Source: Hyalangium minutum (GTDB taxonomy: Bacteria > Myxococcota > Myxococcia > Myxococcales > Myxococcaceae). Taken from it: a stretch of DNA of 64,000 bases. The stretch covers positions 1,054,001-1,118,000 of the forward strand of contig NZ_JMCB01000003.1 of NCBI RefSeq assembly GCF_000737315.1, written 5' to 3'. The notes under the pieces were generated by a model. The model was given only the letters and a program-made list of their open reading frames with translations. It had not been told where the DNA came from and did not search any database. Made by a program: the position numbers and the translations under genes. Of the stretch, positions 48,232 to 56,110 are shown in pieces; position 1 is the first letter of the stretch; each line of letters opens with the position of its first letter.

Positions 48232-50229
48232 ATGAAGCATCCCGCCTCGCCGCGTGTCGTCGCTCTCGTCGGTCCTCAGGGAGCAGGCAAGACGACCTTG
48301 CTGGAGTCGCTGCTGCGAGTCACTGGAGCCGGTCCCCTGCGAGCCACCGGAGGCAATGGCACGGCGAGCGGGCGTACGATGACGATGGAGCTGGCGGCGG
48401 CCACCACGGACTTCCTGGGGGAGCGCTGGACGTTCATTGACTGCCCAGGGGCTCCTGAGTTCTCGCTGGAAGCCCGTCACGCGCTGATGGTCTGCGACGC
48501 GGCGCTGGTGGTGTGCGATACCGGCCCGGATCGCGCGGCCGCCCTGTCGCCGCTGTTTCACTTCCTCGATACGCGCCACATTCCCCACCTGCTCTTCCTC
48601 AACGCGCTGGATCAGAGCGGCGCGTCGGTGCGCGGACTGCTCGACTCGCTGCAAGCCGTCTCCTCGCGCCCGCTGGTGCTGCGAGAGATCCCCTTGCGCG
48701 AGGGGGAGCGCATGGTGGGCGTGGTGGATCTCGTGAGCGAGCGGGCCTGGGGCATGACGGGCGAGCGGGAGGCCGCGCTCATCCCCCTGCCGGAGACGGA
48801 CCGGCCCTTGGAGGAGGCCGCGCGGCGGCAGATGCTCGAGCGGCTGGCGGATCAGGATGACGCGCTGCTGGAGCAACTCATCGAGGACGTCGTGCCTCCG
48901 CCGGGAGTCCTCTACGAGCAGTTGGCGCGGGCGCTGCGAGAGGACCGGCTGGTGCCCGTCTTCATCGGGTCGGCCGAGCGAGGGCTGGGCCTGTTGCGGC
49001 TGCTGAAAGGCCTGCGCCACGAAGTGCCCGCCGTCGAGGAGACGCGCACGCGCCTGGGGATCTCCACCCAGGGGGGCCCCCTGGTGCAGCCCTTCAAGAC
49101 GCGCCATCTGCCTCACGTGGGCAAGCAGTCACTGGCTCGCATCTGGCGAGGCACGGTGACGGATGGGGGCACCCTCGGCGGAGGACGCGTGAGCGGCGTG
49201 TTCCAGCCACATGGAGCGCGGCAGGAGGCGGTCCGCACGGCCCACGAGGGAGAGGTGGCGATCATCGGCCGGCTGGACGCGGCGCGAACGGGAGAGCGAG
49301 TGGAGCAGGACGAGGTCCGCCGCATCACCGGCTGGCCCGCAGCGTCCCCGCCCGTGCACCAGGTGGCGATCACCGCGCAGAAGCGCACAGACGACGTGAA
49401 GCTGCCTGGCGCGCTGGCCCGGCTGGTGGAGGAAGATCCCTCGCTCTCCGTGGACCAGGATCCCGACACGCAGCAGTTGCTGCTCGGAGGCCAGGGCGAG
49501 CTGCACGTGCGAGAGGCGATCGAGCGGCTGGGCGCACACCTGCGGGTGCCGGTGGTGATGCACCCCGTGCCCATTCCCTACCGGGAGACCATCCGGCGGC
49601 ACGGCGGGCACCACGCGCGCTACAAGCGCCAGTCGGGGGGCCATGGCCAGTTCGGTGACGTGGTGGTGGGGGTGCGGCCCCTGCCGCGCGGACAGGGCTT
49701 CAACTTCACCTCGGCAGTGGTGGGCGGTGCGGTGCCCCGGCAGTACATCCCCGCCGTCGAAGAGGGCGTGTTCCAGGGGCTACACCGAGGACCACTGGGC
49801 TTCCCCGTGGTGGACGTGGCCGTCACCTTGATGGGAGGCACCTACCACTCGGTGGACAGCTCCGATCAGGCCTTCCGCACGGCCGCGCGCCTGGCCATGG
49901 CGGAGATCCTGCCGAGGCTGGAGCCGGTGCTTCTGGAGCCCATCCTCCACGTGGAGCTCCACGTGCCGCGAGACGCGATACCTCGGGCCCAGCGGCTCAT
50001 CACCGGCCGACGAGGCCAACTGCTGGGCTTCGATGCGAACCTGGATCTGCCGGGCTGGGACATCCTCACGGCCTACCTGCCGCAGGCGGAGCTGAAGGGG
50101 CTCATCGTGGAGTTGCGCTCGGCATCGGCCGGCTTGGGCACCTTCGTGGCGCGGCACGACCACTACTCCGAGCTGATGGGCCGTCAGGCGGAGCGCGTGG
50201 TGAGCCACCAGCCCGTGGCGGAGCCATGA
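48232..50229 (+). CDS. Elongation factor G-like protein (divergent paralogue)
   Basis: GPQGAGKTT, DCPG, EEDPSL, GQGELH, PYRETI, KRQSGGHGQFGDV, YHSVDSSDQAF, LLEPI. Confidence 0.92.
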   Translation: MKHPASPRVVALVGPQGAGKTTLLESLLRVTGAGPLRATGGNGTASGRTMTMELAAATTDFLGERWTFIDCPGAPEFSLEARHALMVCDAALVVCDTGPDRAAALSPLFHFLDTRHIPHLLFLNALDQSGASVRGLLDSLQAVSSRPLVLREIPLREGERMVGVVDLVSERAWGMTGEREAALIPLPETDRPLEEAARRQMLERLADQDDALLEQLIEDVVPPPGVLYEQLARALREDRLVPVFIGSAERGLGLLRLLKGLRHEVPAVEETRTRLGISTQGGPLVQPFKTRHLPHVGKQSLARIWRGTVTDGGTLGGGRVSGVFQPHGARQEAVRTAHEGEVAIIGRLDAARTGERVEQDEVRRITGWPAASPPVHQVAITAQKRTDDVKLPGALARLVEEDPSLSVDQDPDTQQLLLGGQGELHVREAIERLGAHLRVPVVMHPVPIPYRETIRRHGGHHARYKRQSGGHGQFGDVVVGVRPLPRGQGFNFTSAVVGGAVPRQYIPAVEEGVFQGLHRGPLGFPVVDVAVTLMGGTYHSVDSSDQAFRTAARLAMAEILPRLEPVLLEPILHVELHVPRDAIPRAQRLITGRRGQLLGFDANLDLPGWDILTAYLPQAELKGLIVELRSASAGLGTFVARHDHYSELMGRQAERVVSHQPVAEP

Positions 50230-50378
50230 GCCGCGTGCGCGCGGCCTTCGATCCCGAAGTGCTCCTCTCGGTCGACCAGCTGTAGCTCAGGCGGCACCTG
50301 CCACATTCCAATACCGCCGACGATCCAGGGAGCGCCCAGGGATGACCGGCTGGAACCTGGATGCTAGGTTGCGCCGCC

Positions 50379-50648
50379 GTGCCACGCGTCACCTTTACCT
50401 CCAGCATCCAGCGCCATGTGTCCTGCCCCTCCGAGATGGTAACGGGGAAGACCGTGCGCGAGGCCCTCGAGCAGTACTTCGCCCGCCATCCTCAGGCACG
50501 GGGCTACGTGCTCGATGAACAGGGGGCGATGCGCCAGCACGTCGTCATCTTCGTCAACGGCGGCCAGATCCGCGATCGCGCGGCCCAACAGGATCCCATC
50601 AGCGAGTCCGCCGAGCTCTACGTCATGCAGGCACTCTCAGGGGGGTAA
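50379..50648 (+). CDS. MoaD/ThiS-family ubiquitin-like protein
   Basis: Beta-grasp pattern G.TVREAL...P....VLDEQG..RQHV.IFVNG; C-terminal LSGG. Confidence 0.9.
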   Translation: MPRVTFTSSIQRHVSCPSEMVTGKTVREALEQYFARHPQARGYVLDEQGAMRQHVVIFVNGGQIRDRAAQQDPISESAELYVMQALSGG

Positions 50649-50650
50649 CC

Positions 50651-51745
50651 ATGTCCGACCGCATCTTCGCCGCCACACGCAAGGGGCTCTTCGAGCTCCG
50701 CCGCACGCAGGGCCGCTGGCACATCGTCAACACCTCGTTCCTCGGGGACTCCGTCTCGCTGATGGGCAAGAACCCCGCGGATGGCACCCTCTACGCTGCA
50801 CTGTTCCTGGGCCACTTCGGCGTGAAGCTGCGAGCCTCCACCGACGGAGGCCAGCGCTGGGAAGAGCTGGCGGCCCCGGCCTTCCCGACGATTCCCGAGG
50901 GCGTCGTGGACACCCTGCCGGATGGCAAGCCGTGGCCCTGGCGCGTCGAGCAGATCTGGGCCTTCGAGGCCGTGGAGGACACGCTCTGGGTCGGCACGAT
51001 CGGCGGAGGACTCTTCCGCTCGAATGATCGTGGCCGCTCGTGGGAGCTGGTGCGCGGCCTCTGGGAGCACCCGCAGCGCAAGCAGTGGTTCGGCGGTGGC
51101 GCGGATCTGCCGGGCATCCACTCCATCTGCCCCCACCCGAAGAACCCAAACGAGCTCCTCGTCGGTGTCTCGTGTGGCGGTGTCTGGCGCACCCGCGATC
51201 GCGGCGAGAAGTGGGAGGTCGCCAGCCAGGGAATGTTCGCCGAGTACATGCCTCCCGAGCGGCGCGAGGATCCCTCCATTCAGGATCCGCACATGGTCGC
51301 GCGCAGCCCCTCACACCCGGATCGCCTCTGGGTGCAGCACCACAACGGCGTCTTCCGCTCCGATGATGGCGGCAACCGGTGGCACACCATCCACGAGAGC
51401 GCCCCGAGCGTCTTCGGGTTCGCCATTGCGGTCCACCCTACGGAGCCGGACACCGCCTGGCGAGTCCCCGCCATCAAGGACGAGCACCGCGTCCCCGTCG
51501 ATGGCCGCGTCGTCGTCTCCCGCACGCGCGATGCGGGCAAGACCTGGGAGGTGCTGCGCGAGGGCCTGCCCCAGGAGCACGCGTACGATCTCACCCTGCG
51601 CCATGCGCTCGACGTGGACGCCACGGGAGACCGGCTCGCGTTTGGCAGCACCACGGGCTCGCTCTGGGTCTCCGAGAACCAGGGGGACTCGTGGACGCAC
51701 ATCTCCGCGCACCTTCCCCCCATCTACGCGGTGCGCTTCGCCTGA
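50651..51745 (+). CDS. BNR/Asp-box repeat beta-propeller protein (sialidase-like fold)
   Basis: Repeated S.D.G..W boxes (STDGGQRW, SNDRGRSW, TRDRGEKW, SDDGGNRW, TRDAGKTW, SENQGDSW). Confidence 0.9.
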   Translation: MSDRIFAATRKGLFELRRTQGRWHIVNTSFLGDSVSLMGKNPADGTLYAALFLGHFGVKLRASTDGGQRWEELAAPAFPTIPEGVVDTLPDGKPWPWRVEQIWAFEAVEDTLWVGTIGGGLFRSNDRGRSWELVRGLWEHPQRKQWFGGGADLPGIHSICPHPKNPNELLVGVSCGGVWRTRDRGEKWEVASQGMFAEYMPPERREDPSIQDPHMVARSPSHPDRLWVQHHNGVFRSDDGGNRWHTIHESAPSVFGFAIAVHPTEPDTAWRVPAIKDEHRVPVDGRVVVSRTRDAGKTWEVLREGLPQEHAYDLTLRHALDVDATGDRLAFGSTTGSLWVSENQGDSWTHISAHLPPIYAVRFA

Positions 51746-51760
51746 GCTAGCCTTGAGCGG

Positions 51761-52501
51761 GTGAACGCCCGTCCTGATCCGGAGTTCCGCCCGCTCGGAG
51801 GCAAGGCCTACGGCTCCATCCCCCACCTGCCGGGCTCGCGCACGGGCCCGGCGGATCGGCACCTCTCGCCCACCCACGCGCGCATCTGCACCGAGCGTCC
51901 GCGCGATGCCCACGATCACGTGGTGGTGCTCGAGAAGCTGGACGGCTCCTGTGTGGCCGCCGCGCGCCTGGGGGACGCGATCGTGGCGCTGGGCCGAGAG
52001 GGCCGCCTCGCCGCGCACTCCCCCAACGAGGCCCGGCGGCTCTGGGCGGCCTGGGTTGCGCAACACTCGAAGCGCTTCCTCGCCACCCTCCAGCCCGGCG
52101 AGCGCCTCGTGGGCGAGTGGCTGGCCCTGGCGCATGGGACCCGCTATGCGCTGCGTCACGAGCCCTTCGTCGCCTTCGACCTCCTGAACGGCAACGAGCG
52201 ACGCCCCTGGCATGAGGTGCGAGCCCGGGTGAGCGTTGGGGGCTTCGTCACCCCGGGCCTCATCCACGAGGGTGGGCCGCTGAGCATCGACGCGGTGATG
52301 GCGCGCCTCCAGGGTGGCGGCTTCCATGGGGCGATCGATGCCGTCGAAGGAGCCGTCTGGCGCGTGGAGCGGCGCATCGAGGGTGCCGAGCGCGTGGACT
52401 TCCTCGCCAAGTACGTGCGGCCGGACAAGGTGGACGGCAGCCTATTGCCCGAAAACACCCACCTGCCCGCCGTCTGGAACTGGCGCCCGGAGCCGTCATG
52501 A
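51761..52501 (+). CDS. RNA ligase family protein (stand-alone nucleotidyltransferase domain)
   Basis: Motif I EKLDGS, III GEW, IIIa FVAFD, IV EGAVW, V LAKYVR. Confidence 0.85.
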   Translation: MNARPDPEFRPLGGKAYGSIPHLPGSRTGPADRHLSPTHARICTERPRDAHDHVVVLEKLDGSCVAAARLGDAIVALGREGRLAAHSPNEARRLWAAWVAQHSKRFLATLQPGERLVGEWLALAHGTRYALRHEPFVAFDLLNGNERRPWHEVRARVSVGGFVTPGLIHEGGPLSIDAVMARLQGGGFHGAIDAVEGAVWRVERRIEGAERVDFLAKYVRPDKVDGSLLPENTHLPAVWNWRPEPS

Positions 52502-53712
52502 GCCGCGAGGAGAGCTCCATGCCACGCGCGTTCTTCGTCACAGGCAACCAGTACAAAGCCGAGGAAGTCGCTCGGCTGCTCTCGGGCATCGACGTGGTCT
52601 GGCGCAAGCTCGCCCTCCCGGGGCACGAGCCCGCAGACGACGCGCAAGGCCCCATCGACCTGGGTGCCCTAGCGAAGCGCAAGGTGCTGGCGGCGTACCA
52701 AGTACTCGGCGCGCCATGCTTCGTGGAGACCACGGCGCTCGAGTTGGACAGCGGGGTCACACTCACGGGAGCCCGCTTCAAGAAACAGTGGCTCGCGCAA
52801 GGCGAGCGCGCGTTCCTGGACACCCATGGCGGCAACCGGGGCCGTGCGCGGGTGGCCGTGGCGTTCTCGGAGAATGGCCATCCGGGTCACGTGGCCCTCT
52901 TCGAGGGCTCCATGGCGGGCACGCTGCTCACGGAGCCTCGGGGCGAGGGCGGCTACGGCTGGGATCGCGCCTGGCTGCCGGATGGGTACGAGCGCACGCT
53001 CGGAGAGATGGCGCAGCACAAGTTCTTCCTCAACATGCGCCACAGGCCGTACCTCGAGCTGGCGGATCGACTCCGGGAGCAATCGGCGGGCGGGGCCTAC
53101 GAGGCGCACGTGACGATCGCGGCGCGCTCGGAGGACGAGTTCCAGCGCTTCCGTGCTTTCTGCGGCGCGGCGGGGGTGAAGTGCATCTTCATCGAGCTGG
53201 GCCAAGGCGAGGCGCGCTTCCAGCCCATGACTGCCTCCTACCACCACGGTCCGCTGAAGCAGGCGCAGGAGGAGGTACAGGCCTTCGCACGCGCGCTGGC
53301 GGTGGAGGGCTTCGACGTGACCCGCCTGAAGATCGAGGCGCTGGGCGCCAACAAGGACATTCCGAGCGATGACGCAACAGCCCGGGCCCAGCCCGCGAAC
53401 TACTTCGAGTTCCACGTCAAGGTGACGCTGCCCGCGGAGGGGGCGGACGTGGAGGCACTGCGGGCGCGGTGCGAGCGGTACGGTGCGCACCTGTCGCGGA
53501 ACGCGCGCAAAGTGCGGGCGGATGGGGGCGCCGAGCGCTTCGTCACGTTGCGAGTGAAAGGACTGGGCCGGGCGAACGCGGAGGCACGCTTCTCGGCGGT
53601 GCTGCGGGATCTGGCAGAGACGGGCCTGCCCCTCTCCTACCCGCTGCGCGAGTACACGGTGTACGACTCGAACCACGCACTCGATCGAGGCTGGGGCGAG
53701 GTGCGGTCATGA
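52498..53712 (+). CDS. HAM1/ITPase-like NTP pyrophosphatase domain fused to an uncharacterised C-terminal domain
   Basis: FVTGNQYKAEE, FEG...G.....RGEGGYGWD...P.GY..T.GEM; C-terminal half with YEAHVT, YFEFHVKV, HLSRNA, EYTVYDSN...D.GW; ATGA overlap with ligase. Confidence 0.85.
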   Translation: MSREESSMPRAFFVTGNQYKAEEVARLLSGIDVVWRKLALPGHEPADDAQGPIDLGALAKRKVLAAYQVLGAPCFVETTALELDSGVTLTGARFKKQWLAQGERAFLDTHGGNRGRARVAVAFSENGHPGHVALFEGSMAGTLLTEPRGEGGYGWDRAWLPDGYERTLGEMAQHKFFLNMRHRPYLELADRLREQSAGGAYEAHVTIAARSEDEFQRFRAFCGAAGVKCIFIELGQGEARFQPMTASYHHGPLKQAQEEVQAFARALAVEGFDVTRLKIEALGANKDIPSDDATARAQPANYFEFHVKVTLPAEGADVEALRARCERYGAHLSRNARKVRADGGAERFVTLRVKGLGRANAEARFSAVLRDLAETGLPLSYPLREYTVYDSNHALDRGWGEVRS

Positions 53713-54533
53713 GCCCCCCACCCGTCCTCCGGGCGGCCACGGGGCTCTTGCGGCGCCTCTCTCACTCGCCCGAGGCGGAGCAGCTCGTCCTGCGGGGCGG
53801 GATGATGATGCGCCTGTGGTCCGGTCCGGTACCTCGGCCGGTGGAGGACATCGACTTCCTGGCTCTCTTCCCCTTCGACCCGGCGGCGACCGCCGCAAGG
53901 CTGGAGTCCGTCTGCCACGTCGAGGCGGGCGATGGGCTCCGCTTCGGCACGCTCCGCTCCGAGGTGATCTGGGCGGAGACGAACTTCCCCGGCGTACGAG
54001 CCTTCGTGGATGTGACGCAGCCCGGAGGCGAAGCGCCTTTCGAGCTGCGGATCGACACGGGCTTCGGCGATCCGATGGATCCGCCCCCGACCTGGATAGA
54101 GCCAGCCTTGGAGGAAGGGCCCCCGGCCCGGGTCCTCGCCTGTCGGCCGGAAACTCTGTTCGCATGGAAGGTCCACGGCCTCTTCGAGCGGGGCAAGGGC
54201 CGCTTCCGCCCAAAGGATCTCTTCGACGTCTACCTGCTGGCGAAGCACTCGCCGCTCGCTCCAGCGCTGCTGCCCCGGGCACTCCGGCTCGCGTTCGACT
54301 CGCGGGGTGACTCGCTCGATCTCACCTCGCGGCTCATCTCGGGCGAGTTCGGCCGGAGCCCCTGGAGCATGGAGAAGTGGGCACGCTTCAGGCAGAGCCT
54401 GCCGGAGGGGCGCCCGGAGCAGCTCGCCGAAGTGGTGGCCTCGGTCGCGGCGGTGCTCGGTCCGGTGGTGGCAGCGGCCCGTGAGCTTCCACCGGCCGCA
54501 CGCCCACCCCCTGTCCACCCTCCTCCTCAGTGA
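53709..54533 (+). CDS. AbiEii/AbiGii (DUF1814)-family nucleotidyltransferase
   Basis: LRGG.......R..EDIDF, RIDTGFGDP, ETLFAWK, R.KDLFD; ATGA overlap with the upstream gene. Confidence 0.85.
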   Translation: MSPPPVLRAATGLLRRLSHSPEAEQLVLRGGMMMRLWSGPVPRPVEDIDFLALFPFDPAATAARLESVCHVEAGDGLRFGTLRSEVIWAETNFPGVRAFVDVTQPGGEAPFELRIDTGFGDPMDPPPTWIEPALEEGPPARVLACRPETLFAWKVHGLFERGKGRFRPKDLFDVYLLAKHSPLAPALLPRALRLAFDSRGDSLDLTSRLISGEFGRSPWSMEKWARFRQSLPEGRPEQLAEVVASVAAVLGPVVAAARELPPAARPPPVHPPPQ

Positions 54534-56110
54534 TCTCCGGTGTGGCCGTGGGACTGAGTGTGCGGCACGACCTCGAGCACTTCGGCCATTCCCAGGTCCC
54601 CATGCTCGGCGATGTGGCAGTGCATCATGAACTGGCCGAGGTAGCGAACGTAGCGAGTGCGCAGCTTGACGGTCTGCCCGCTGCGAACAATCACCGTGTC
54701 CTTCCAGAGGATCTTCCCGTCCTCGGTCGTCAGCTGGAACGGATTCACGTGGATGTGGAAGGGATGGTTGAAGTTCTGGGACGTCACGCTCCACTCCTCC
54801 ACCGCGTCCAGCATCAGCTTGCGCACCGCGTGGGGATCGAATTCCTTGCCATTGATCAGGAACCGCGGCGGCGTCACCGAGAGGTCGATGCTGAAGACGA
54901 CCTGCTGCTGCCCGGTGATCTCAGCGTCCTGGATGGGCTTGAACGGAGCGAGCGGCGCCAACTCCTGAGCCGTGGGGAGGCGCATCCTCTTCAGCTTGCC
55001 CTTCGCCACCACCACCCGAGCCAGGGTGTGCCCCGGTGCGGGAGCTGGCATGTTCTCGTCCACGAGGAAGTATGTCCCCGGCGGCAGCGGAGTCCCATTC
55101 ACCTCCGCCGCACGCACCATCACGTCCACGCGGTAGCCGGGATGCATCTCCGTCTCCGTCACCGCGTCGATCCGGCCGGTGGTGATGCCGTCATGCGCGA
55201 TCTGGAACTGCGTCAGGGGGAACTCCTGATTCCCCTGGCGACGAACCAGCCGGAGCTTGAGCATCTCCCGAAGGCCGCCGTGGATGAACCGCCAGCGCTG
55301 CACCTCACCAGGGAACAGCGTGTAGGTGGGCTCGACTTCTCCATTCAGCGTGAAGCGCCGCCCCTGGGTCGGCCACAGTCCATTCCTGAGCTGGTCATAG
55401 TTCTCCACCATGAAGGCCTGGTGCCCCGGCATCGTGGGATCATCCATCAGCTCATAAGGGATCTGCTGGAAGAGGATGATCCGTTCCTTGGCGGCGCGGA
55501 TGGCGGGCACCCTGTCGATGTCGCCTCGGATGATCAGTGGGCCGGCCATGCCGCTGGCAAGCTGGAGCGTCGCTGAGCCATGCTTGTGCGCGTGGTACCA
55601 GTAGGTGCCCGCGGGATGGTCCAGGGGGATCTTCACCTCGTACTCGAATCGATGGCCTGGAGTCAGGGCCAGCATCACGTTGTCCGCGTTCCCCGAGGGC
55701 GACACGTGCAGTCCGTGGAAGTGAAGATTCGTGGTGTTGAAGCCGTGAGGCTCGGTGCTCGGGTGCTCCATGCCATCGAGGGGCGGCGGCTCGGGAGGGA
55801 GCTGGTTCTCCAGGGTGATGTTGAGCGTGTCCCCGGGAATGGCCTCGATGAGCGGGCCGTGCAGCTTGCCGTTGTAGGAGCGCAGCTTGACCTGGTCCCA
55901 GGCGGTGCACCCTCCGTCCTGAACGCTCCGGCAGATCCGGTGCGTGGCATACCGGAGTTTCAGGTGGATGAAGAGATCGCGAGGAGAGCGCTGGCGCTTG
56001 CCACCGCGCTGATGCGCCTCCTCATGCGCGTCCTCATCATGACGGTCATGCTTCAGGAACCGTTGGTTCCGCTCGACGACTTCGCCCGGGGTCGCTGCTT
56101 CATAGGCCAT
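54527..56110 (-). CDS. Multicopper oxidase
   Basis: NLHFHG, YWYHAH, HPFHIH, HCHIAEHGDLGM copper motifs. Confidence 0.93.
   Translation of the reverse strand: MAYEAATPGEVVERNQRFLKHDRHDEDAHEEAHQRGGKRQRSPRDLFIHLKLRYATHRICRSVQDGGCTAWDQVKLRSYNGKLHGPLIEAIPGDTLNITLENQLPPEPPPLDGMEHPSTEPHGFNTTNLHFHGLHVSPSGNADNVMLALTPGHRFEYEVKIPLDHPAGTYWYHAHKHGSATLQLASGMAGPLIIRGDIDRVPAIRAAKERIILFQQIPYELMDDPTMPGHQAFMVENYDQLRNGLWPTQGRRFTLNGEVEPTYTLFPGEVQRWRFIHGGLREMLKLRLVRRQGNQEFPLTQFQIAHDGITTGRIDAVTETEMHPGYRVDVMVRAAEVNGTPLPPGTYFLVDENMPAPAPGHTLARVVVAKGKLKRMRLPTAQELAPLAPFKPIQDAEITGQQQVVFSIDLSVTPPRFLINGKEFDPHAVRKLMLDAVEEWSVTSQNFNHPFHIHVNPFQLTTEDGKILWKDTVIVRSGQTVKLRTRYVRYLGQFMMHCHIAEHGDLGMAEVLEVVPHTQSHGHTGDH

Follow-up and report, generated by a model that had tools for sequence, protein, structure and literature searches.

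A HAM1-fused twin-ferredoxin protein of Hyalangium minutum as a putative partner of an AbiEii-type nucleotidyltransferase

The gene under study is an open reading frame (ORF) of Hyalangium minutum that encodes a HAM1-like domain joined to a twin-ferredoxin C-terminal domain (CTD). It lies in a stretch of 64,000 nucleotides (contig NZ_JMCB01000003.1 of assembly GCF_000737315.1, positions 1,054,001 to 1,118,000 of the forward strand), which is called the window here and is numbered from its first letter. The HAM1-CTD ORF (52498..53712, plus strand; 404 aa from ATG 52498 in the ORF list) is the middle of three plus-strand genes. A small, ATP-dependent RNA-ligase-like nucleotidyltransferase of 246 aa precedes it (51761..52501, plus strand; Pfam PF09414 RNA_ligase, E=1.3e-15), and an AbiEii/DUF1814-family nucleotidyltransferase of 274 aa follows it (53709..54533, plus strand; Pfam PF08843 AbiEii, E=6.6e-33). 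Both junctions of the cassette read TCATGAGC, with the stop codon and the next start overlapping by 4 nucleotides (nt) at each, and the ligase, HAM1-CTD and AbiEii genes are translationally coupled. The PF09414 assignment of the upstream gene agrees with its nucleotidyltransferase motifs, among them the lysine of motif I (KxDG). It matched phrog_38169 (E=6e-37), and its motif I, EKLDGS, and motifs IV/V could be recognized in an alignment with ORF260 of phage XacN1, in which GEW, EGAVWR and KYVR aligned as well (activity predicted).

A second possible start of the HAM1-CTD ORF, ATG 52519 (Met8), follows a GAGGAG box after a gap of 6 nt and would give a protein of 397 aa. About 230 homologues of the protein were found, mostly 380-400 aa long, the closest named ones being from Hyalangium, Pyxidicoccus and Myxococcus. 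Because most of them are 397 aa and begin at Met8, and because the GAGGAG box stands at 6-nt spacing, 52519 may be the true start. One full-length relative (P0047, from a metagenome-assembled genome of Labilithrix sp.) is named 'ankyrin' in NCBI; it has no resemblance to ankyrin repeats, and the name is probably an annotation artefact.

The HAM1/ITPase-like domain (residues 12-190; 52531..53067, plus strand) belongs to the HAM1 family (PF01725) by sequence and by fold. Pfam Ham1p_like spanned residues 12-174 at E=4.8e-18, above its gathering score. The best match among PDB sequences was KomB (8zsg, E=5.3e-16), followed by the KomBC entry 9v0g and then human ITPA (1e-10). The full-length AlphaFold2 model had a mean predicted local distance difference test score (pLDDT) of 92.3 and a predicted template modeling score (pTM) of 0.87, the latter of which suggests that HAM1 and the CTD form one unit. 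By Foldseek, the HAM1 part of the model was placed best on dITP-bound KomB (9xvc_A; template modeling score (TM) 0.86, root-mean-square deviation 2.3 Å), and human ITPA scored TM 0.78-0.80.

A first-pass annotation of the window, made from the letters alone, had noticed that the HAM1 catalytic motif is altered to ETTAL, that the C-terminal SHR motif reads NMR, and that TGN..K and G.GWD are kept. It had proposed an alignment to ITPA as a check, and this alignment confirmed the substitutions. In alignments to ITPA and KomB, E77-T78-T79-A80-L81 (52726..52740, plus strand) occupied the HAM1 E-D-T/S-G-L site, on human ITPA E71-D72-T73-C74-L75, with Asp replaced by Thr; N179-M180-R181 (53032..53040, plus strand) fell on ITPA S176-H177-R178. 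T15-G16-N17..K20 and G152-Y153-G154-W155-D156 retain the remaining two motifs. Column frequencies were taken from 111 full-length homologues. At the D72 column these carry N (47), T (24), S (18), V (9), A (5), R (4), L (3) or Q (1), and at the E44 column the window protein has G; neither column holds a single acidic residue in the 111, so that the pair of acids found in active pyrophosphatases (the ITPA E44 and D72 equivalents) is missing from the window protein and from every homologue. The NMR motif is nearly fixed (N in 104/111, M in 108/111, R in 111/111), and the equivalents of ITPA N16, K19/R, E22, E71, K89, W151, D152 and R178 are 88-100% conserved. The proposal that this part is a non-catalytic nucleotide binder held up well: because both metal-ligand acids are gone family-wide, the contact residues are kept and KomB is nearest by sequence and by fold, the domain very probably binds nucleotide without hydrolyzing it.

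That HAM1 is still an active house-cleaning pyrophosphatase of altered specificity, with the fusion adding a second, unrelated function, is highly improbable. Its fold is intact (TM 0.74-0.86 over ITPA, KomB and PH1917), the E71, K19, K89 and R178 equivalents are retained, and NCBI and JGI label the family as non-canonical purine nucleoside triphosphate (NTP) pyrophosphatase. The two catalytic acids are nevertheless absent from 111/111 sequences, a single Asp-to-His change at the same position accompanies the loss of hydrolysis in KomB, all NCBIfam ITPase equivalog models scored far under their cut-offs (45 bits vs 203), and the domain is dispensable in close relatives. Relative to ITPA, RdgB and Mj0226, the window domain has the same fold and keeps TGN..K, E22, K89, G-W-D and R178, but it is missing both acidic metal/catalysis positions, has Met in place of H177, is fused to another domain and is embedded in a conflict-type operon.

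KomB is reported to carry His65 in place of the catalytic Asp, to have lost hydrolysis, and to sense dITP and thereupon activate the SIR2 effector KomC (PMC13454610; bioRxiv 10.1101/2024.12.20.629578). Across the defensive HAM1 (KomB) clade the His at the Asp position is invariant and the protein always occurs with KomC (bioRxiv 10.1101/2024.12.20.629578). KomB of the Kongming system (KomABC) and the window domain share the HAM1 fold, a replaced catalytic Asp, retained nucleotide-contact residues and M in place of the motif His (S-M-R in KomB, N-M-R in the window protein, S-H-R in ITPA); by analogy, the window HAM1 may likewise be a nucleotide sensor coupled to an effector. The two differ in that Asp is replaced by Thr, Asn or Ser in the window family and by His in the KomB clade, that the E44-equivalent acidic residue is lost as well in the window family, that the window HAM1 is fused to the CTD and paired with AbiEii rather than with the SIR2 NADase KomC, and that no KomA-type deaminase is present. 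Membership of the described KomB clade was rejected, since neither the His (zero in 111 at the Asp column) nor the association with KomC (no SIR2 in the window or in loci L001-L005) holds here.

A search with the HAM1 domain alone gave 8 matches, and the stand-alone ones carry canonical ED, EE or DD motifs. In relatives from Myxococcus, Archangium and Pyxidicoccus, HAM1 has been removed by in-frame internal deletions with three different end-points (P0033, P0067, P0111; L014-L016, L018-L020). These relatives retain 12-36 N-terminal residues, with ligase, CTD and AbiEii intact, which suggests that the sensor domain has been lost repeatedly. Because it is deleted in frame while the other parts stay, HAM1 is regarded as an accessory module on a self-sufficient core.

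The CTD (residues ~199-402; 53092..53703, plus strand; delimited by the AlphaFold2 model and PADLOC PDLC02277) is internally duplicated. Structure prediction with Foldseek, also proposed earlier as a check, yielded a confident two-unit model and weak PDB matches alone. In the alignment-based AlphaFold2 model of residues 190-404 (pLDDT 93.1, pTM 0.88) two beta-alpha-beta-beta-alpha-beta (ferredoxin-like) units stand in succession. By conservation and in the model, an ExHxT motif (E202-A-H204-V-T206; 53101..53115, plus strand) lies on strand 1 of half 1 and an ExHxK motif (E304-F-H306-V-K308; 53407..53421, plus strand) on strand 1 of half 2. The two similar halves reported by the first-pass annotation were recovered by profile-profile comparison (89.6% probability, E=1.9e-6, 83 columns), in which FEAHVT aligned with FEFHVK.

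Conservation of the CTD was assessed in 54 stand-alone bacterial homologues and in phage homologues at ~28% identity, with residues given in domain numbering (protein numbering is obtained by adding 189). M55, R87, K89, E91, Y113, F114, E115, H117, S144, N146, T161, R163, E196, D201, D207 and W210 were invariant, and H15, T17 and K39 were nearly so. E196, D201, D207 and W210 belong to the terminal EYTVYDSN..LD.GW, a segment singled out from the letters at the outset, in which most other positions are nearly invariant too. ExHxT does not vary within the fusion family, is conserved to 90% or more across the 54 diverse stand-alone homologues and is kept in phages. Y113-F114-E115-H117 is invariant including phages; K119 shows conservation among the bacterial proteins that the phage ones lack. 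Because conservation alternates along the strands, the conserved side chains are predicted to line one face of each sheet, and the two halves may thus enclose a polar cleft or tunnel. The enzyme-like pattern of conservation makes a phosphoryl-transfer-type active site plausible.

No Pfam family matched the CTD even at E<=10, and a profile built from 54 diverse members found no credible solved relative among PDB sequences. Foldseek against the PDB returned weak tandem-ferredoxin matches (HemQ/chlorite dismutase and ACT tandems) at a query-normalized TM <=0.36, from which no functional inference was drawn. The paired ExH motifs had been likened to those of two-histidine (2H) phosphoesterases. 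As a family assignment this failed, because no sequence, profile or structural match to 2H proteins was obtained: no 2H family in Pfam matched at E<=10, the 50 best Foldseek matches in the PDB included no 2H protein, and an hhalign comparison with an E. coli ThpR sequence entered by hand gave 2.3% probability. The topology also differs, the His motifs of the CTD standing on strand 1 of the ferredoxin-like units and not in the 2H arrangement. With the 2H proteins LigT/ThpR, CPDase and the Trl1 CPD, the CTD has in common an internal duplication in which each half bears a conserved His motif (HxT in half 1) and an RNA ligase that is neighboring or fused, as in Trl1; it differs from them as a tandem of ferredoxin-like units, and in a second motif that reads HxK in the bacterial proteins and varies among those of phages.

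The CTD defines a large family of autonomous domains with an internal duplication. Among 1.84 billion representative proteins, a search retrieved 2,478 clusters (50% identity) at E<=1e-3, and 1,845 of these at E<=1e-10. Architectures were classified for the 145 best new representatives with local hidden Markov models (HMMs) and Pfam. Stand-alone CTDs of ~205-240 aa made up 93 of the 145, and HAM1-CTD fusions ~25. Ten were CTD-AbiEii fusions (including P0206, P0249, P0273 and P0309), two were AbiEii-HAM1-CTD fusions (P0303, P0328), and single representatives carried an RNA ligase (P0216) or a tRNase-Z-like metallo-beta-lactamase (P0315) fused to the CTD. A Pfam scan of the unknown N-terminal extensions of CTD proteins gave nothing.

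Linkage was counted by a CTD-profile scan of one genome per species, in the best 80 of 303 relatives. These loci come from at least four bacterial phyla (Myxococcota, Cyanobacteriota, Planctomycetota and Actinomycetota, with Alcaligenaceae also represented). An AbiEii ORF lay directly downstream of the CTD on the same strand in 73 of the 80. The seven exceptions comprised one contig edge, two degraded CTDs, one LRR (leucine-rich repeat) gene inserted before a frameshifted AbiEii, and three loci without AbiEii, in which a Pfam scan of the neighbors found an LRR protein and nothing else. Stand-alone CTDs paired with AbiEii occur likewise on contigs from Rivularia, Streptomyces and uncultured bacteria. 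In the window, the PADLOC model PDLC02277 'AbiEi' matched residues 201-399 of the HAM1-CTD protein (E=1e-63) and PDLC02319 'AbiEii' matched its downstream neighbor (E=3.8e-98), an adjacent AbiEi and AbiEii pair being what PADLOC defines as AbiE. From the linkage and the PADLOC models together, the core unit is therefore taken to be a two-gene CTD plus AbiEii module with AbiE/MenAT-like syntax. HAM1 was present in 9 of the 80 loci. The RNA ligase lay upstream in ~15 Myxococcota loci, after AbiEii in one (L044) and 3.7 kb away in one Gemmataceae locus, so that RNA ligase and HAM1 are essentially Myxococcota-only additions.

Other genes recur beside the CTD-AbiEii module. An LRR protein of ~600 aa adjoins it at several loci of Myxococcota and Planctomycetota (L009:7406-9280, L067:5497-7323, L034, L038, L042), perhaps as a sensor or as a third part of the system; its N-terminal 'RLVYADWLEEQGE' motif is presumably TIGR02996-like. 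Defence-type genes besides LRR proteins recur there as well. In Archangium gephyra (L005:3345-5155) an AAA_15/AAA_21 ATPase gene and a 173-aa ORF stand directly upstream of the ligase-CTD-AbiEii cassette and may be a neighboring defence system. Actinoplanes rectilineatus (L075, 3529-6479) has a tandem pair of CTD-AbiEii modules, and another locus (L082, 5846-7566) has one CTD followed by two AbiEii genes.

The AbiEii enzyme of the window keeps the nucleotidyltransferase signature hG[GS]...D-x-D as LRGG...EDIDF. Its best PDB match was AbiGII (9hlo_B, E=1e-9), on whose catalytic motif LRGG...EDIDF fell. In the related MenAT systems, MenT toxins add nucleotides to the 3'-CCA ends of tRNA and stop translation, and the AbiEii of S. 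agalactiae blocks translation and carries out pyrimidine-specific nucleotidyl transfer (PMC11375011; bioRxiv 10.64898/2026.01.19.700257). The structurally unrelated AbiEi, MenA1 and MenA3 neutralize their toxins by inducing auto-phosphorylation of an active-site Ser/Thr, the phosphoacceptors being T65 of AbiEii, T39 of MenT1 and S78 of MenT3 (PMC11375011; bioRxiv 10.64898/2026.01.19.700257). At this site AbiGII reads R-S-T-V-D-I-D and the window protein R-P-V-E-D-I-D, and AbiEii T65 is presumed to map to this position. Ser/Thr is lacking there in ~58 of 62 CTD-linked AbiEii proteins, whose commonest motifs are R-E-P-G-D-L-D and R-P-V-E-D-[IL]-D. Because the clade is without the phosphoacceptor, the published neutralization mechanism is not directly transferable; if the mapping of T65 is right, the CTD-linked clade would need some other control, which fits a different partner.

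Canonical AbiEi homology (COG5340; Pfam AbiEi_1/3/4; PDB 6Y8Q) was sought for the CTD and rejected: no AbiEi family in Pfam matched at E<=10, and none was among the Foldseek PDB hits. The cassette nonetheless resembles AbiE and MenAT in its two-gene core, its partner gene upstream of an AbiEii-family nucleotidyltransferase, its overlapping start and stop codons, its variable genomic locations and its PADLOC names AbiEi and AbiEii. It differs from them in that the CTD is not homologous to canonical AbiEi (a winged helix-turn-helix (wHTH) plus COG5340 domain), MenA1 or MenA3, shows enzyme-like conservation and occurs alone in viruses; in that an RNA ligase gene and a HAM1 domain are added in the window; and in that the CTD-linked toxin clade is without the Ser/Thr of the published auto-phosphorylation mechanism.

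The HAM1-CTD ORF is read as a partner or regulator of the AbiEii-type nucleotidyltransferase in a non-canonical AbiE-like cassette, of toxin-antitoxin or phage-defence type, with the dead HAM1, by analogy with KomB, as an added purine-(d)NTP-sensing input; a probability of about 0.5 is assigned to this reading. The CTD would keep the AbiEii enzyme in check, either by binding it or by acting on its nucleotide or RNA-end substrate through a pocket lined by His, Lys, Arg and Glu. HAM1 would bind a purine (d)NTP, perhaps one of the non-canonical kind that builds up under stress or when phages infect, such as (d)ITP or XTP. Ligand-bound HAM1 would then alter the CTD-AbiEii interaction, and the nucleotidyltransferase would be switched on or off. 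The ligase would be a lineage-specific accessory that may reset or repair RNA afterwards. This scheme presumes that the AbiEii enzyme is toxic and that the CTD neutralizes it, and it presumes the ligand and the direction of the ligand's effect.

Viral copies of the CTD were found by structure and by sequence. Against a viral structure library, the seven best Foldseek matches of the CTD model had TM 0.68-0.85; the best ones include Aeromonas phage LAh_8, Sinorhizobium phage phiM12, Klosneuvirus, Fadolivirus, Yasminevirus and Bodo saltans virus, all of them uncharacterized proteins, with the giant-virus homologues at TM 0.69-0.76. By tblastn, 21 phage records covered at least 80% of the domain (E 3e-8 to 4e-15), and an IMG/VR scan added 19 further CTD loci. 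In all of 25 viral loci, the 5-6 kb flanking the CTD gene on each side contained no AbiEii gene, and solitary viral CTDs of this kind fit a phage counter-measure. The phrog_1247 and phrog_25995 proteins (XacN1 ORF257, LAh_8 gp023, phiM12 gp254) and the Klosneuvirus-type proteins share with the window protein the twin-ferredoxin domain and its invariant residues, and about half are fused, as it is, to an N-terminal NTP-pyrophosphatase-type domain. They differ in that this domain is MazG-like and looks active, against a dead HAM1, that the AbiEii neighbor is absent and that they are annotated as hypothetical. For phiM12 gp254 (L012:5022-5627) the annotated start is probably ~26 residues short; the protein as annotated lacks the ExHxT strand, and its phrog_25995 match begins at profile position 27.

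The N-terminal extension, ~100 aa long and present in roughly half of the 25 viral loci, is labeled phrog_1247 "MazG-like pyrophosphatase" (XacN1 ORF257, E=1e-121) and carries EExGEL and EExxD motifs; Pfam does not recognize it as MazG, the assignment coming from the PHROG label and these motifs. Such proteins bear on a further explanation, in which the CTD would process or bind nucleotides in concert with an NTP-pyrophosphatase-type domain and would manipulate a nucleotide pool or signal rather than the toxin or RNA directly. The CTD could act on the nucleoside monophosphate, pyrophosphate or NTP of the AbiEii reaction, or it could degrade or sequester a nucleotide signal. Independent fusion of the CTD to two unrelated NTP-pyrophosphatase folds, HAM1 in Myxococcota and the MazG-like domain with motifs intact in many phages, speaks for this, as do the giant viruses with a CTD, which infect eukaryotic hosts, the lack of AbiEii next to the viral copies examined, and the weak resemblance of the CTD fold to tandem ACT-type ligand-binding domains. 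Most bacterial CTDs are however without a pyrophosphatase domain (the 93 stand-alone representatives above), tight linkage and fusions to AbiEii indicate a specific protein partner, and a coupled two-step reaction is unlikely in the window protein because its HAM1 is predicted to be inactive. This explanation is considered doubtful.

Some phage CTDs have RNA-related genes nearby: XacN1 has a PF09414 ligase, phiM12 has both Rnl1 and a CCA-adding enzyme, and LAh_8 has a TROVE-like DUF2828 protein. Genes for tRNA occur in 5 of the 25 viral loci; the association with RNA-related genes is anecdotal. The XacN1 ligase, ORF260 (L010:1587-2237), is annotated '2'-5' RNA ligase' yet matches PF09414 at E=6e-26; it is 26% identical to the window ligase and lies 2.5 kb from the MazG-like-CTD gene.

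The first-pass annotation had suggested that the CTD heals RNA ends for the adjacent ligase. The adjacency to a ligase is real, but the choice of partner did not stand, as AbiEii is the near-constant neighbor and the ligase is almost confined to Myxococcota. In its wider form the proposal is an RNA-repair cassette, in which sealing falls to the ligase, end healing to the CTD as a twin-His phosphoesterase or phosphotransferase, and rebuilding or tailing of the 3' end to the AbiEii-type enzyme. A pattern of ligase, nucleotidyltransferase and end-modifier is said to have been proposed for RNA-repair systems by Burroughs and Aravind. Consistent with such a cassette are the ligase directly upstream in ~15 Myxococcota loci, the CTD-AbiEii-ligase order of L044, the ligase-CTD fusion, the tRNase-Z-like fusion to the CTD, the RNA-related genes and tRNA genes near phage CTDs, and the enzyme-like invariant His/Lys/Arg/Glu/Thr set. 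Set against these, the ligase is missing from most non-Myxococcota CTD-AbiEii loci and from 24 of 25 viral loci searched with the same HMM, the gene order and 4-nt overlaps resemble toxin-antitoxin (TA) modules, a kinase or phosphatase family is not recognizable in the CTD, which is not 2H either, and a hydrolysis-dead HAM1 would have no obvious role in repair. Characterized AbiEii and MenT proteins are, moreover, growth-arresting toxins (PMC11375011; 10.64898/2026.01.19.700257). An RNA-repair cassette is on balance unlikely, if somewhat less so than the nucleotide-handling module.

The reading of the HAM1-CTD protein as an AbiEii partner meets several observations that weigh against it. About 17 mostly polar CTD residues are invariant from Myxococcota to phages at ~28% identity, as in an enzyme or ligand pocket and unlike a fast-evolving antitoxin. 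The CTD has no wHTH DNA-binding domain and no similarity to canonical AbiEi, its fold being twin ferredoxin-like, and the linked AbiEii clade is without the Ser/Thr phosphoacceptor that AbiEi, MenA1 and MenA3 exploit. The HAM1 substitution is T/N/S and not the His of the defensive clade, and there is no SIR2 partner. The window cassette stands among housekeeping-type genes with no recognizable defence island. Toxin and antitoxin fused in one polypeptide are unusual for classic TA logic, and the role of the ligase is not explained.

DarG is an antitoxin that enzymatically undoes the chemistry of its toxin DarT. If the CTD were an antitoxin that undoes or pre-empts toxin chemistry by enzymatic means, in the manner of DarG and DarT, its enzyme-like conservation, its copies in phages and its RNA-related neighbors would all agree with a role as AbiEii partner, and neither the RNA-repair nor the nucleotide-processing explanation is exclusive of that role. 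A more specific version is speculative: the twin-ferredoxin domain may be a new enzyme family with a pseudo-symmetric His/Lys/Arg/Glu pocket that directly counters AbiEii/MenT-type nucleotidyltransferases, for instance by taking off, or blocking, the nucleotides that they add to tRNA 3' ends. Phages and giant viruses would have captured the domain for broad counter-defence, often along with an active MazG-like domain, and in Myxococcota a hydrolysis-dead HAM1 would have joined it to sense a non-canonical purine nucleotide, the ligase serving recovery. If the CTD were such a counter-AbiEii enzyme and HAM1 such a sensor, the cassette would represent a second, Kongming-independent case of immune signaling by base-modified nucleotides, wired to a translation-targeting effector.

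Full-text literature searches found no paper linking HAM1 with AbiE, or PF09414 with PF08843. The AbiE frame and the PADLOC label on the CTD are already known. New are the independently inactivated HAM1 wired to a non-SIR2 effector, the large partner-domain family, which is structurally and functionally uncharacterized, and an AbiEii clade that appears to be without the canonical phosphoacceptor. Work on Kongming tied hydrolysis-dead, signal-sensing HAM1 proteins to SIR2 effectors (bioRxiv 10.1101/2024.12.20.629578). The window family places its inactivated HAM1 on a wholly different effector class, an AbiEii nucleotidyltransferase, and because of this joining to a non-SIR2 effector, HAM1 nucleotide sensing may be a more general input to conflict systems. 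The CTD, with ~2,500 clusters, has neither a Pfam entry nor a solved structure, serves an entire AbiEii clade as its dedicated partner and has been captured by jumbo phages and giant viruses. Its chemistry would reveal how this toxin clade is regulated and could expose a new phage counter-defence.

Around the cassette, no Rfam family reached its gathering score anywhere in the window (1-64000), and no sigma-70-like promoters were found in 50200-55000. The sole terminator-like site of that interval was on the minus strand (52807-52791) and within the expectation from shuffled sequence, and no Rfam family, promoter-like site or terminator-like site is credited to the inside of the cassette. The order of ligase, HAM1-CTD and AbiEii is kept in relatives at 46-51% identity, with differing flanking genes. 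In the window, the flanks look housekeeping from their translations, with genes for an EF-G-like protein, a multicopper oxidase and a glucose-6-phosphate dehydrogenase; Pfam adds a ThiS/MoaD-like and a BNR-repeat protein to these flanking genes. The G+C content of the window is about 61-71%.

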